Below, piece after piece: positions 19,482 to 35,248 of a DNA stretch of 64,000 nt. The position numbers and the translations under genes were made by a program. Location of the stretch: positions 1,550,001-1,614,000 of the forward strand of contig CM007989.1 in assembly GCA_002189035.1 (NCBI GenBank). Reading direction: 5' to 3'. Positions within the stretch are counted from its first letter, which is position 1. Each line of letters begins with the position of its first letter. The DNA comes from Utricularia gibba. Lineage: Eukaryota > Plantae > Magnoliophyta. Under the pieces are notes generated by a model. That model saw only the letters and a program-made list of their open reading frames with translations, ran no database searches and was not told the DNA's origin.

Positions 19482-21527
19482 TTAAGAGACTGTCCTCTTG
19501 CTCTTTTCTAGCTTTGTGCGTACCTTTTCTTCCAGCTGGGAGATGAGGGTATCCAGGCTGAATATTCTGTTCAGGGCGTTCATGTTTTCAAGTGTCTCGT
19601 TGAGGGACTGAGGGTCGGCTTTGTCGCAACGCAGGTGCTGCATTGGACCGTGCAGGAGCTTGTTCACAATCCCATTGCTGAGATCGTAGATGGCCTTCTT
19701 CTGTTTATCAGGGATGTCACTGCCGAGTTTAGCCAGGCATTTTTCGACCTCAGAAGTCCTGATTCTTTCTGCATAAGCCCTCAGCTTCTTGATTGTTGGA
19801 ACAGCTTCGAGAGAATACTTCCAAGCTTCGAATTGCTCCACTTCTTCTGCTATGATCGCTTCAGCTTCCTTGGCTTTCTGAAAACGGTCCTCTGCGTTGG
19901 CAGCGACTACTTCTTTCAAATCATCAACATTGTAGAGTTGGATGCCCTCGATTTCGGCCACGGATGGTGCCACATTACGAGGAACAGAGATATCGACGAA
20001 TAGCCTTGGTGAAGAGGGGAGGGCCTGAACTTGTTCTTCTGTGAAGAGGAGAGATTCTGATGCAGTACATGTGAAGATAACATCGGCTTCTGCAGAAGAT
20101 GCATGCATTTCCGAGAGAGGCCTATATTCTATTTCAACATCCTTCAGCTCCTCACGTATGGATGCAACTCTGTCCTCTGTTCTATTCACAACAACCATCT
20201 TTCTGAAACCCTTGGCAACCAAATGTTTGATAACCAGTTTTCCCATCTTACCAGCTCCAATGACCAACATTCTCGAAGACTCACGGCTCACCTCTGGAAG
20301 TTTCATCAAGGCAAGCTCTACAGCAGCAGAACTAACAGATACTGATCCAGTGGAGATACTGGTTTCTGTTCTCACTCGTTTTCCACTGTAATTGCTTGCT
20401 TGAAGAGCCCGCCGATTTTACGATCAAACCCCGGCACTCCTTGTCCTGCTTTAACAACTTGCTTTACCTGTGCAAGAATCTGACCTTCGCCCAGAACCAG
20501 GGAATCAAGCCCAGAAGCTACTTCAAAGAGGTGTTGCGTTGCATCCTTGTTGTAGAGGAAGAATCTGTGCTTAGATAACTCAGAGACTGGTACCGAGCTT
20601 CTCTGCCAACATTGACATCAAAATCAACAACAGCTTTGGGAAATTGCTCATTGCAAAATCTTTCATAACCAGCTTTTTTTTTTATGGGAATCATTCTGTT
20701 AAACTAGTGATCTCTAAGCCTATTAACATGAAGACATTTTCATGCAATGGGGAAACTTTTTCCTAGTCTACTATCCACAACACCGATTTGTAGTAATCCA
20801 AGCAGAGTAATGTTTAACTTTGATAGCAGATTGTCAAAAAAGTAAGTACCTTTGACATCCATTCAGTAACTTCTTTAACTCCGCGATGTTGTGACAGAGC
20901 AACAACATATATCTCCATCCGGTTGCAAGTGCTAAGAACTGCTGCCTCCTCTATATGATTCAAATCACATAGTTCTTCAATCACCTTTGGCCACTGTGCT
21001 TCTTCTATTGCAATTTTCTCACGTATATCGATTGGAGCGGTTCGATAGTTCAATCCTATCACTACAATGCTACTACTTTCCCTGGTGTAACCTGAAAGGA
21101 AACAAAACAAACAACCTTGATTTCATTACAACCCATAAACAACTTTCCAAATTCCAATCCACCATCGAACTAAGTTCACATTAAATACATCCTGCAATTA
21201 ATAACATGAAATGTGCATCATACAAACGAAAAATCTCGTCACAGAATTAAAAAACATACGATCGGCACCGGAGGCTTTGAGAAACTCCAAGGCGGAAATA
21301 CTCGACGACTTGGTCTCAGCATCGGTAGCATGATCAGAAACTTCACATCTAGGACTCGATTTCAAAACACTATAATTTAATTCATAAGGCCCTTTCCCCC
21401 TCTTCCGGGGGAAACAAACCGAATAAGGTTTGCTGCCGCGGGAATGAATCCCCGGGTTGATCTCCATCTTCGCATTGCAATTAGAACGTGAAAAACACGC
21501 CGCGAATCCAATCTCCGTCGCCGCCAT
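19482..21527 (-). CDS. HEMA: Glutamyl-tRNA reductase, plastid, 3 exons; apparent 1-bp deletion at ~20384
   Basis: Transit peptide, [15 protein letters not shown], catalytic [30 protein letters not shown] and [11 protein letters not shown]. Confidence 0.93.
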
Positions 21528-29861: not shown

Positions 29862-30461
29862 ATGGCTCTCGAGACTGTGAATTCATCTACGGCGCCGGCG
29901 TGCGGCGTCGACGAGGTGGATACCTGGACCAAGTCAAAGCGATCCAAGCGTCAGAGGCGTGCTTACGGTACTACGCCGGAGGAGGAATATCTTGCATTCT
30001 GTCTTATGATGCTCGCTCGCGGCGGCGGCGTCGGTGGTCAGTCTCCTCCTGCTGGAGGTAAGGATGTCAAGAAATCGGATGGTGAATCGTTTCCGCGGAT
30101 CGGCAACTGTTACAGGTGCACCGTGTGCGATAAGGCTTTCTCCTCCTACCAAGCCCTAGGCGGTCACAAAGCCAGCCACCGCGTCAAAATTCAGCCGACC
30201 TACGACGCCGCGCCGGGTTTATCCGCTAGCAATTTCAGCGTTTCCGCGGCGGATAAACTCCACCAGTGTTCAATTTGCCAAAAGTGTTTCCCCACAGGGC
30301 AGGCTCTCGGCGGGCACAAACGGAAACACTACGACGGCGTGCTCGGCGGCGCTGCAGCGAAAAGCCGCTCCACTTCCTCAGCCACTCGCAACTTTGACCT
30401 GAATCTCCCGGCGCGGGCGGAGCCGCAGGATGAAGAAGTCGAAAGCGCTCCAGTAGCGTGA
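29862..30461 (+). CDS. ZAT10: C2H2 zinc-finger EAR repressor (ZAT10/STZ-like), intronless
   Basis: MALE start, [10 protein letters not shown]-box [13 protein letters not shown], two QALGGH fingers and EAR motif FDLNLP. The ORF-track start at 29682 is upstream of the likely ATG. Confidence 0.92.
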
Positions 30462-31480
30462 TTCGCACAACCCGTGTTGCCTATTTAGGGATCCAGCCAG
30501 TGAATTCTTTCATTCCTTGCCTAGTGGTAATGTAATGTAAATATGTAATCAATGTAGACAACAAGAAAGGGGAATTTCTGTGTGATTGCAATTGGAAGAA
30601 ATCCCGTCCCGTTCTAACAAAAGGTACAACTCGGGGACTTCAGGATTACGCTTTGCGGGGTTGTACCTTGGGACCTGCGAAGCAATGGATAACGTTGAGG
30701 ACACGGCTGGGGGGATGCGTGTCGCATCCATCCCATCTTCATACTTCCCTGCCAAGTAATTGGCATCACTCTCTTATCCATTATTCTCTACCAAACCATT
30801 ATTCCAAAAATAAAACAAAACAACAAACCTGAACATTTTCCAAAAATTACCGCTCCAAAGACATTTTTTTATTAATTTTCTTCCCAAAACATATTTGAAT
30901 ATATTTTCATTTTCAGATACACTTATAATTAGTTTGTTATCTCTTGGTCGAATATAATAACGATATGATAGGTACAATATGAATCATCACTGTTTGTAAG
31001 ATATTCATCAAAAATCGTGTTATTTAAATTTTATATAATATTTAATTATATCTAATCATTTTATTTTTAAAAATAAATTAATATTGACTCATTAAGAAAT
31101 TTTCATTTTTATAAATTAGGCTAAAACTCCTTAACCTGATTGAGTAAAATAATTTTACCTTTGAAAAAATAGAGATAGTGTTATTCATATGGCACAACTT
31201 ATTTTTACTTATACTTTGAAAAAATAAAAAAATATAGATGACTCATTACTTTTGAAAAATCCATTTATACTTTGGAAATTATATCCAAAAAATGGTTTTC
31301 ATTTTTATTTGATGAGATGATAAATACGACGAAAAGTTAGGGAAAAAAAAAAGATCACATGGCTGTAGAAGCGACGAATTTTCCTGGACATGTGTTTCAG
31401 TACGCCGCCGTCTCTGTTTAATACTCCGGGAAACTCTCAGCTATAAATGCTCCTCCATCACATCTCCAAGTAGCTAAAAC

Positions 31481-31857
31481 ATGGCTTCTACCAAGGCGCT
31501 TGCTTGTTTCTTCTTAGTGGCTGCAGTGCTCCTCATTTCCGATTGCGTCTCTGCTGGTGCATCATCATCATGTTACTATAGCTTTGTTCAGTTGAGTTAC
31601 ACTGTTTGCTTATTGATCTTGACCTTCGTTGTCTTCATTTGTCAGCCGAAGAGGAATTGGGATCCAACTATGAGCCTGACCAGTTGGGAGGAGGGGCGTT
31701 TTGCGCTCAGCTGCGTGGATGTATCGCTCGTTGGGGATGCGTAGAGTGTTGCATCAGAAACCCAGAGCGTGAGAGATGCAATAGATGCTGCCGACCGCCT
31801 TCAGATTACCAGAATGGGAATACTGGAACTCATGCTGAAATCCAACCCAACAACTGA
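31481..31857 (+). CDS. Secreted Cys-rich peptide 1 (GRP3-like signal and tail, 8 Cys, no Gly-rich region); intron 31557-31645
   Basis: TATAAAT at 31442, signal-like MASTKALACFFLVAAVLLISDCVSA, phase-1 intron, mature part AEEELGSNYEPDQLGGGAFCAQLRGCIARWGCVECCIRNPERERCNRCCRPP...AEIQPNN*. Confidence 0.8.
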
Positions 31858-32320
31858 TGCAGTCAAGAACCACCCCTGCTGTTCTTGCTGCTGCTCTTCT
31901 GTCCCTCGCTTATTGATAAATAAGTGGCAATCTCTGTGTTGCCTTATATGTTATGTCAGCTGCTCTGCTTTTCTTCACCATCCTTGCCTCTGTGGGATGT
32001 AGAAGAAGAAAATACTTGAGTTATGAATAAAGGAATGAACCATTTGTGCACCAATAACTGCTGCTGCTGTCATGGAAATTCATGGGGATACAGGCAAAAC
32101 TTGTAATACATGAAGTAAACCAAGCCAGCCTAAACTCCACCCTAAGGTTCAGGGTCCATTTCAGAATCCATTGTTGGTGGGTCGACTGTCGAGGGGAGTT
32201 GCTTTTCACGCTGAGAAGTCAACTCGATGTACATGCACTACTGCAAGAAGAGTCTATCTGCAACCATGAACAGCACTGCACCCCCCAGTTGAAGCAGCAG
32301 CAGCAGCTTTAAAATACTGA

Positions 32321-33342
32321 CTACTTGTCTTGTGAAAACCAACCAAGCTGCACACAAAGGAGTGAAACAAATTATGAATGAATTCTCATTGCACAGGAAG
32401 TTTATTTTGGTAGCATCTAATACCTTACCTTCCAAGCATACATGCCGAAGAATGCTACTGTGTCTGCAGACCAAACAGCTGCAAATGATTTCCAAAAGAA
32501 TGGAATTGTGACATTCAGTAATGGGATGAGCAGGAAAAGGTAATTCAGAGCTTCCTTCTCATTCTTTGAACAGTCCCGAGCTCGAAGAGATGGAATAGCT
32601 GAAACAAACCGACACCTTTTCATCAGACATACGCAAGAGGTAACCAAGAATAAAGGGACAATAGAATCCGTCAACAGTGCAGCAACATCCAAGCACATTC
32701 TTGACATCCTAGTTTTAATATTGGTTCAAAATCCCACGTTCAAAGGAAAAAAAAAATTTGTCAGGCAAGAACAAATCATCTGATTTCCGGGTAAATAGGA
32801 GCAGCAAATGGTGAGGAGTAGTTACTGAACATCCAAATGGACCACATGCCCATCAATCTCCAAATGTCTGGTTCATTCGAGGGAAATATGAGATTAAAAG
32901 AGAGAGCTCCTCCCAACAACAAAGAAGCGTATCCCTGAACTTCAAACACGGTGTACAAAGCAGTTCCCGGTTGAGCAGGATTTTTTGTTGCGGTCGAAGC
33001 TCTCGGCGCAAAAGTTGCAGCAGTCTTCTGGACCACCTGTTTCAAAAGAACGATTCGCGAAAACAACAATCCAATCATTCATTCACATGCACGAAGACGA
33101 ACAGAGAAACTCGAACTGCACAAAAGGAAAAACCTTTTTGAGATCCTTTTCAACTGAAGGTGACCCAACTGGAAACTTGAGATTTTCCTTTTCTTGAAGA
33201 GAATCTTCAGGCCCTTGTTCTACACTCGTTTCCAGCTCATTGGAACTCGCTCGGACTCTGATTGCAGCGCCTCTGCGGATGAATATGAAGGGAACCCTTG
33301 GATTTGGGTGCTGCAGAGAAGCGCCGAGGGTAACGCGCTCAT
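32321..33342 (-). CDS. RPH1: RESISTANCE TO PHYTOPHTHORA 1-like plastid membrane protein, 4 exons; start and an indel in exon 1 uncertain
   Basis: DLKK/VVQKTAATFAPRASTATKNPA, EPDIWRLMGMWSIWMF/TIPSLRARDC and WSADTVAFFGMYAWK/LGW. The nearest ATG (33342, MSALPSALL) is out of frame with the conserved part. Confidence 0.85.
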
Positions 33343-33739
33343 GATTCTTCAACAGCACTGCGAATGGGGATTGTGTGGATTTTTCCAGAGTACCTCCTCC
33401 CCAATTTCCTACAACTGAAACGGATAACCGCTGGACCGAGGCCGGTGCCACATCTGCCCATTCGGGTCGGGTTCGGGTAGCCCAACGGGCTGCTCAAACA
33501 TGAGTTACGAATTGAATCAAATTTATTAAAAAATGTTTTTTTAATACCTTTCAGGTAATTTATAATTAAAATTCTTTTTAATGGATTTTTGAAAAACAAA
33601 ACACAAGGACTCGAATTAAAATGCACGCAATTAAACAAATATATACGATAACTTTAAAATAAGAATAAAATTAAAAGTTATTCAAAAATTATAAAATTAA
33701 AAAGCATATATTATCTAGATAAGATGCATCCTAAAGTAA

Positions 33740-33820
33740 GTCTAATCCTTGGAAAACTTTAACAATATAACCATAAAAAGGTCTAATCCTTGGAGAACTT
33801 TAACGATATAACCATAAAAA
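33740..33820. repeat. 41-bp tandem duplication
   Basis: GTCTAATCCTTGGA(A/G)AACTTTAAC(A/G)ATATAACCATAAAAA occurs twice, 2 mismatches. Confidence 0.9.
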
Positions 33821-34223
33821 AGAATTTAAAATATGTATATTCTTTAACAACATAAAAAAATAAAATAAAATTTCAGCGTTAACTGAAAGATTAAATTATT
33901 AAACTAGTTTAAAAAATGAATCCAATTTGAATTAGAAAAAATGGTTCAACTAAATCTCACTGTTAAACATTTATTCTAAAAATAGAAATTATTAGTGGGT
34001 TGCTTTTCAAAGAGAAGAATTGAAATTGGTGTCAATTATTGTCTTCTTTTTGCCCAAAAGATGCTTTGGCAGAAATGAGGGTATGAATCCATGGATTTCT
34101 TGACAGTTCAGGATCAGGTCTCCGGGATGTGTTTGCTCCTCCGTTCTACCTCTGAATCCCTTCTTCTTCTTCTTCTTCGTCTTCTTCTTCCATAAATAGA
34201 GAAGCACGGCGCCATACAGAAGC

Positions 34224-34604
34224 ATGGCTTCTTCCAAGATGCTGGTCTTTGTGAGCATACTCTTCGCCATGGCCCTCCTATCCTCCGGGAAGCCTACGCC
34301 GCCGCATCTACTGACGCGGGTATGGATGCGCATGCCCTGAGTTGCACACTTTTACGCACATATAATGAATGCTTTCTCGTTGCTCATGTCTCTGCTTGTT
34401 CTGTGCTCAGGCGAAGTTGACCAGTTCCCATGGTTCGGATGCCGCTGGTACCGGTGTTTCGGATACGGATTTGGGTGTTTCCAGTGCTGTCACGAACGCT
34501 ACTTCTTCTTTGGAGCCCGCCGGAGATGTCGCCGGTGCTGTGTCGCATACTCAAACGCGGCTTTTGAATCTCAAAAAACCAGCCCAAGAACTGATGCACC
34601 ATGA
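34224..34604 (+). CDS. Secreted Cys-rich peptide 2 (same 8-Cys family); intron 34320-34410; apparent 1-bp deletion in GGG at 34287-34289
   Basis: TAAATA box at ~34193, signal-like MASSKMLVFVSILFAMALLSSG. With one extra G the frame continues EAYAAASTDA/GEVDQFPWFGCRWYRCFGYGFGCFQCCHERYFFFGARRRCRRCCVAY with a phase-1 intron, as in peptide 1. Confidence 0.72.
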
Positions 34605-35248
34605 ATGACAGATGATAAGTGGATGTAATAAACAATAATCCCACAATATTGTCATATGTATTAATTATATATTTGATAAATATTGATATTTAATACTATG
34701 AATTAAATATTCAAATAATTTTGTTATTTAAACAATTTAGTGGTAAAATTACATTATTACTTTGTTAATTATTTATTATATTGATTTCATATGATAATTA
34801 AAAAATGTTGGAATAGAATGGATGGGTGATTCGGGTCGGGTGCAGTTTGAATGGGCAACCCGTCTGAAGCCTATAGAGAAGAGAATATATTGCGTATCGC
34901 GCAAACAACGCAACCAGCAGAGCGCTTGGCTGCAGCCTGCGATATATATAGAGGGAGAAGTACGGCTGCAAGACACCGCTGCATATGATTCCTCGCTCCA
35001 AGTCAAAGCTCCCAACTTTTTAAGCAAATTCGAGAATCGATTTTGCGGGTTTCGGAAAAGTCTCTCCGCCTCAGTGTTCGTGTTGCCATTTTCCTACTCG
35101 ATTTCATGATCGGAGGAGTAGGGGCGCTTGAGACGGCTGACGCAGCGGTGCCTGACGGCGGCGGGGTAGATTCGGAAGCTACCGTTGAGTCGGTGGCTGT
35201 GGGCAAGGGGTTTAGGAGAAGGGTTTTGTCCCAGGAGTTGTTGCGTCA

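Follow-up and report, generated by a model that had tools for sequence, protein, structure and literature searches.

Plant genomes contain hundreds of fast-evolving genes for cysteine-rich peptides (CRPs) that lack annotation and take part in defence and cell signalling. The question raised by the locus described here is whether two small genes that lie close together belong to such a peptide family and, if so, from what they descend and whether both of them are intact. The locus is part of a 64,000-nucleotide (nt) stretch of the Utricularia gibba genome (GenBank assembly GCA_002189035.1, contig CM007989.1, positions 1,550,001 to 1,614,000), hereafter the window; all coordinates are window positions and refer to the plus strand unless the minus strand is indicated. 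Gene 1 (31481-31857) and gene 2 (34224-34604) each have two exons and appear to encode a small secreted peptide. We favour, with somewhat more confidence than doubt, a reading in which both are old paralogues, duplicated in tandem, within a lineage-restricted family that encodes secreted prepropeptides rich in cysteine; in the plant, gene 2 would most likely be intact. The pair is real and probably expressed, and the plant peptide family to which it belongs, although undescribed, is of an unsurprising kind.

Architecture and kinship of the two genes

Both genes have in common a leader beginning with MAS(T/S)K, an intron placed just after the leader, an acidic spacer ending in DQ and a cysteine core of the form C-x4/5-C-x5/6-C-x2-CC-x8/12-C-x2-CC. 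By inspection, both leaders have the typical n-, h- and c-regions of a signal peptide, with a basic n-region, a hydrophobic core of 13-14 residues and small residues at positions -3/-1 (VSA in gene 1 and SSG in gene 2). When the six frames of the window were scanned with a regular expression, the full eight-cysteine pattern gave exactly two matches, which are these two genes, and the half pattern C-x2-CC-x5-16-C-x2-CC likewise gave exactly two. Three hundred sequences of 64 kb simulated with a first-order Markov model contained neither pattern. Furthermore, four of the eight CxxCC motifs in the window lie inside the two genes. Since the pattern is restricted to these two genes in the window and was met in none of the 300 simulations, the shared architecture and cysteine frame are far beyond what chance would produce.

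With regard to gene 1, a TATAAAT element (31442-31448), read directly from the sequence, is found 39 nt 5' of the ATG and aligns with the ATAAAT of gene 2. Exon 1 (31481-31556), which on translation gives the secretion leader, comprises 76 nt, that is 25 codons plus 1 nt, and thus ends in phase 1. It is followed by an intron of 89 nt with GT..AG borders (31557-31645) and by exon 2 (31646-31857), which encodes an acidic spacer ending in EPDQ, a glycine triplet (GGG), a core of 30 residues with eight cysteines and a tail of 21 residues, closed by a TGA at 31855-31857. The mature part (31648-31854) has the cysteine spacing 5,5,2,0,8,2,0, with a charge of -5 in the spacer and +3 in the core, and an AATAAA is present 3' of the stop codon at 32026-32031.

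Gene 2 follows the same plan. A TATA-like CATAAATA (34191-34198), weaker than the TATA element of gene 1, lies 33 nt 5' of its ATG; a CTT microsatellite (approximately 34158-34190) adjoins this element on its 5' side. As assembled, exon 1 (34224-34319) encodes the secretion leader in 96 nt and ends in phase 0. The intron of 91 nt (34320-34410) has its GT at 34320 and its AG at 34409-34410. In the cysteine frame, exon 2 (34411-34604) encodes a spacer ending in EVDQ, an eight-cysteine core of 34 residues that is rich in arginine and aromatic residues, and a tail, with a TGA at 34602-34604. The cysteine spacing of the mature part (34413-34601) is 4,6,2,0,12,2,0, the spacer and the core have charges of -2 and +7, respectively, and an AATAAA is present 3' of the stop codon at 34627-34632. 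The original prediction of paralogous genes for small secreted peptides, composed of an acidic spacer and a cationic eight-cysteine core, is therefore supported by the architecture, the cysteine frame and the charges, and a TATA element does precede each ATG, as it had proposed.

The kinship of the two genes is read from their architecture, the cysteine frame and two short conserved DNA blocks. The first block lies at the start of the genes (31477-31500 in gene 1 against 34220-34243 in gene 2), with 83% identity over 24 nt, and the second at the stop (31838-31861 against 34575-34598), with 88% identity; both were recovered by alignment and, independently, by a repeat finder. Moreover, the motif TGAGTT(A/G)CAC is present in both introns. 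The same orientation, exon plan, distance of the TATA element, intron motif and conserved blocks argue for an origin as old tandem paralogues, between which a single minus-strand gene now lies. Several points weigh against this reading. The DNA identity is only 45-55% (55% in exon 1, 53% in the intron and 45% in exon 2), so that the paralogy rests on the architecture. The mature parts are 33% identical in a MAFFT alignment, with cysteines and arginines accounting for most of the identity, and BLASTP did not find a significant alignment between them.

Class II glycine-rich proteins as possible ancestors

The cysteine core and the spacer of both genes recall the glycine-rich protein (GRP) GRP3, the tail of which has six cysteines arranged as C-x2-CC...C-x2-CC. 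The spacer of AtGRP3 reads KPDQ, and GRP genes have an intron right after the leader. A GRP3-like frame without the glycine-rich region had been proposed for both genes, a description of which one part stands and the other is less firm: the glycine repeats are indeed absent, whereas the kinship with GRP3 relies on a Pfam match below threshold, a single glycine triplet and the likeness of the tail. Class II GRPs are defined by a signal peptide, a glycine domain of the GGxxxGG type and a C-terminus enriched in cysteine (PMC4777284, PMC5852109). In AtGRP3, this cysteine-rich end of 34 residues is required for binding to the wall-associated kinase (WAK) WAK1 (PMC4783359), and in LsGRP1 from lily the cysteine-rich C-terminus is antimicrobial (PMC7411634).

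PF07172 (GRP) is the only Pfam family that touches either leader. Its match to exon 1 of gene 1 reaches 11.2 bits (E=0.6) over profile positions 1-25 of 90. A number of results count against the link with GRPs: this score is below the gathering threshold of 30 bits; PF07172 does not match exon 1 of gene 2 or either of the exon 2 products; no class II GRP was recovered by any of the searches, including the exhaustive profile search; and the defining GGxxxGG domain is absent, gene 2 lacking even the single GGG that gene 1 has exactly where its spacer meets its core. As the glycine repeats are missing, two extra cysteines are present and no GRP was recovered, these peptides cannot be assigned to the class II GRPs. 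That the family descends from such proteins appears plausible, and on this point our judgement is about evenly poised.

Alternatively, this could be an orphan CRP family without any origin in glycine-rich proteins, which resembles GRP3 through convergence or through a style common to secretory peptides. We regard it as a serious possibility, although short of an even chance. It would explain why neither PF07172 nor any GRP was matched significantly, why glycine repeats are absent and why the two additional cysteines have no counterpart in the six-cysteine tail of GRP3. It sits less easily with the finding that, of all Pfam families, it is PF07172 that touches the leader, with the position of the GGG at the expected place, and with the way in which the DQ that closes the spacer and the half reading C-x2-CC...C-x2-CC both match the GRP3 tail. 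If the family does derive from class II genes of the GRP3 type, the glycine repeats would have been lost and two upstream cysteines gained. A more detailed scenario, in which the glycine repeats were lost from a class II GRP gene and a fourth disulfide was added, so that the WAK-binding and antimicrobial cysteine module became a free-standing secreted peptide that then gave rise to fast-diverging copies in the very compact genome of a carnivorous plant, is one that we consider rather improbable as a whole.

The reading frame of gene 2 and the assembly

As assembled, exon 1 of gene 2 ends in phase 0, whereas the cysteine frame of exon 2 requires phase 1. A phase-1 intron had been predicted in both genes; this is correct for gene 1, with its 76-nt exon 1, and applies to gene 2 only if one base is added. 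A run of GGG at 34287-34289 is the site at which a single missing base would reconcile the two frames. The frame that starts from 34289, within this run, reads EAYAAASTDA up to the donor, which it reaches in phase 1, and this sequence is typical of a cleavage region. One more G at 34287-34289 would thus join the leader and the cysteine domain in one frame. Codon usage over the last ten codons of exon 1 also favours the shifted frame (+3.9 against -3.4), in a test which was trained on the genes of the window and is weak, since gene 1, its positive control, failed, making it uninformative for peptides rich in cysteine and arginine.

Two other genes in the window help to judge whether the assembly could have lost a base. 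In the gene for glutamyl-tRNA reductase (GluTR), on the minus strand, there is a minus-one shift within the GlutR_N domain at 20375-20389, across GTGGAAAAC, in a conserved motif. The match to positions 70-143 of the Pfam GlutR_N model ends at 20384 and the remaining protein continues from 20381, one base off, which leaves no space for an intron. The likeliest cause is that the assembly lost one base of a homopolymer; otherwise, this copy of HEMA would be broken. The second case is the multi-exon gene that separates the pair (32100-33451, minus strand). Its sole ATG, at 33342, starts a frame resembling a transit peptide, and this frame is offset by one base from the long open reading frame (ORF) of the first exon, in the region 33220-33451; this ORF lacks an ATG of its own. 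The offset is probably another dropped base. The label RPH1 that had been given to this gene could not be confirmed, as no Pfam match was obtained and a word search with the first-exon ORF returned nothing.

The shifts in GluTR, in the middle gene and in gene 2 all go in the direction of a base missing from the assembly, and the one in gene 2 falls at a homopolymer. Because the essential GluTR gene and the middle gene carry the same minus-one shift, loss of a base in the assembly is a more probable explanation than a pseudogene. We conclude, with moderate confidence, that the frame conflict in gene 2 is an assembly error in which a base was dropped from the GGG run. The claim that peptide 2 is hidden from ORF callers by a single missing base agrees with this, given that the frame from 34289 fits and that the GluTR and middle-gene controls make a dropout in the assembly likely.

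A second base might be missing further downstream. A run of six A residues (34573-34578) lies immediately 5' of the block that is homologous to the stop region of gene 1, and this block is one base out of the cysteine frame. The TGA homologous to the stop codon of gene 1 is found at 34592-34594, and the coding length of gene 2 from the ATG to this TGA is 96 + 184 = 280 nt, a length that can be in frame throughout only with exactly two added bases. A second dropout at the A6 run is thus possible, and it would change the tail alone.

According to the next alternative, gene 2 became a pseudogene recently: its exon 1 would truly carry the minus-one shift and the copy would be decaying, with gene 1 as the functional one. 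Its leader and cysteine domain are in different frames as assembled, and its tail is likewise shifted with respect to the conserved stop block. Moreover, the donor GT and the acceptor AG of gene 1 are aligned with CC and TG in gene 2, in an alignment that is poor in the splice-site stretches, so that gene 2 would need new splice sites 20 and 16 nt downstream. These observations speak against an intact gene 2, and they fit decay as well. On the other hand, the eight cysteine codons and an open frame of 63 codons have all been retained despite a DNA identity of about 45% to gene 1, and the TATA element, the context of the ATG and the AATAAA are intact. As the same minus-one shift recurs in GluTR and in the middle gene, it is the assembly itself that becomes suspect, and we consider the pseudogene unlikely.

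Gene 2 could also be intact as it stands in the assembly, if the phase-0 donor at 34319/34320 were joined to a second acceptor AG at 34423-34424, giving a shorter spacer without EVDQ. This option needs no edit of the sequence, since ACCAG followed by TTC at 34425 preserves the frame. We find it very unlikely, given that the AG at 34409-34410 comes first and has a better pyrimidine tract, that the conserved end of the spacer with its DQ would be spliced out, and that codon usage favours the shifted frame, although by a weak test. Even less credible is a cysteine-free secreted protein rich in serine, threonine and alanine, produced as assembled by reading from the phase-0 exon 1 into the other frame of exon 2 (34411-34608). 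That frame is open over the entire exon (ORF 34369-34608, plus strand) and in phase with the leader, and annotation pipelines would probably call it; nevertheless, the cysteine frame repeats the eight-cysteine frame of gene 1, which was never met in the simulations, and the assembly demonstrably drops bases, as in GluTR. We know of no relative of such a product.

Since bases are dropped from homopolymers even in essential genes, small genes that look broken in this assembly should not be called pseudogenes without resequencing. With regard to the surroundings of gene 2, the AT-rich spacer on its 5' side contains a unit of 40 nt that is duplicated in tandem with 95% identity (33740-33820). Similar motifs containing GGGTCGGGT flank the region at 33463-33492 and 34829-34866; they are absent from the output of the repeat finder at the settings used and might be remnants of transposable elements.

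Relatives, possible function and comparison with known families

Searches for relatives were run exon by exon, not on joined spliced precursors. Neither mature part has a Pfam match at E up to 10, which includes the Snakin/GASA, non-specific lipid transfer protein (nsLTP) (eight-cysteine motif, 8CM), defensin, thionin and hevein-like families. A word search with exon 2 of gene 1 gave no candidate, and nothing was returned from the ESM Atlas for either peptide. An exhaustive profile search over 1.84 billion protein representatives returned 11 matches at E < 0.001, all of them long proteins with 4-11 repeats of the RanBP2-type zinc finger, and a profile search of the PDB had as its best match the RanBP2 finger of RBM10 (E=0.014). 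A full-text search of the literature for patterns of the CxxCC type recovered only GASA and tetracysteine tags.

Structural comparison does not add to the favoured reading of a secreted disulfide-rich peptide family. AlphaFold2 predicted three short helices for gene 1 at a predicted local distance difference test (pLDDT) score of 60, and strands for gene 2 at 54. Foldseek gave 0 matches against the PDB, and a wide VIA-align search reached a best Z of 2.9, with generic helical bundles only. Low-confidence models that contradict each other for two supposed paralogues count against this reading, and no conclusion on the fold is drawn from them.

Little weight can be given to this lack of relatives, since the C2H2 gene next to the pair does not find any protein above 54% identity either, and the proteins of the source genome are outside the collection searched. 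This intronless C2H2 zinc-finger gene of the ZAT/AZF type (29862-30458) lies 1 kb 5' of gene 1. Its best relatives are 45-54% identical, and its best named matches come mostly from Lamiales (Castilleja, Penstemon, Orobanche, Salvia and Genlisea). Such distances point to a fast-evolving lineage without a close annotated relative, and peptides evolving as fast as these would escape detection at such a distance. The window as a whole is plant nuclear DNA, with genes for glutamyl-tRNA reductase, BCAS3, C2H2 zinc-finger and B-box proteins as neighbours. Within the reach of Pfam, the profile searches and the published cysteine spacings, the framework matches no described family, as had been suggested, and a check for membership in a described CRP class gave no Pfam match and a spacing that differs from the published patterns.

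The zinc-finger matches can be traced to the core of gene 1, the second half of which (31729-31791) reads W-x-C-x2-C-x3-N-x5-C-x2-C and so mimics the RanBP2-type signature. That the core is a zinc-binding knuckle related to RanBP2-type fingers, and not a disulfide-bonded peptide, is scarcely credible even though these multi-repeat proteins are the sole matches of the exhaustive search and the finger of RBM10 is the best match in the PDB: both proteins have a signal peptide, the W and the N are missing from gene 2, the spacing in gene 1 is one residue short (x5 against the x6 of the finger), the Pfam models themselves give no match with E up to 10, the scores of the profile search are summed over the 4-11 repeats of each protein, and the eight cysteines pair up as four disulfides would require. 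Homology to the RanBP2-type zinc finger was thus rejected as spurious. Owing to its finger-like spacing, gene 1 nonetheless retrieves multi-finger proteins when large databases are searched, by which automated annotation could be misled.

With regard to function, the product of exon 1 would direct the peptide to the endoplasmic reticulum and be cleaved off as a signal peptide, and exon 2 would provide the acidic spacer ending in DQ, a cationic eight-cysteine core of 30-34 residues and a short tail. The eight cysteines would form four disulfides, and the acidic spacer might be removed. The peptides would then act in the apoplast, either in defence through an effect on membranes or as ligands or modulators of wall-associated kinases. 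By analogy with the C-terminus of LsGRP1, a membrane-active defence peptide of the apoplast is the role that we tentatively put forward; a receptor or WAK ligand, by analogy with AtGRP3, is a more doubtful suggestion. If the more detailed scenario of a cysteine module freed from a class II GRP is true, the family would be a natural set of free variants of the GRP3 tail, which tune WAK signalling or control microbes in the apoplast or the trap fluid. Should the link with GRP3 hold, such peptides would be natural probes for the poorly understood binding of WAKs. More generally, the pair adds modestly to the many fast-evolving plant peptides of defence or signalling, to which it contributes a cysteine framework that is undescribed and a path by which free peptides might have evolved from structural glycine-rich proteins.

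Compared with known systems, these peptides differ from the RanBP2-type zinc finger (W-x-C-x2-4-C-x3-N-x6-C-x2-C), which is intracellular, whereas they are predicted to be secreted and have extra paired cysteines. They resemble the canonical plant families of CRPs and antimicrobial peptides (AMPs), such as thionins, defensins, hevein-like peptides, knottins, nsLTPs with the 8CM, alpha-hairpinins and snakin/GASA peptides, in being small secreted prepropeptides with a cationic disulfide core, and also in their acidic pro-region, tandem duplication and rapid divergence of the loops. The cysteine patterns of these CRP and AMP families have been published (PMC4695807, PMC9856046), and the spacing 4-5,5-6,2,0,8-12,2,0 fits none of them. 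With the class II GRPs (AtGRP3, LsGRP1 and CpGRP1), they share a signal peptide beginning with MAS.K and a presumed apoplastic destination, and they resemble GRP3 in the DQ end of the spacer, the C-terminal C-x2-CC...C-x2-CC module and the intron after the leader. Unlike these proteins, they have eight cysteines instead of six, highly divergent loops and no GGxxxGG domain.

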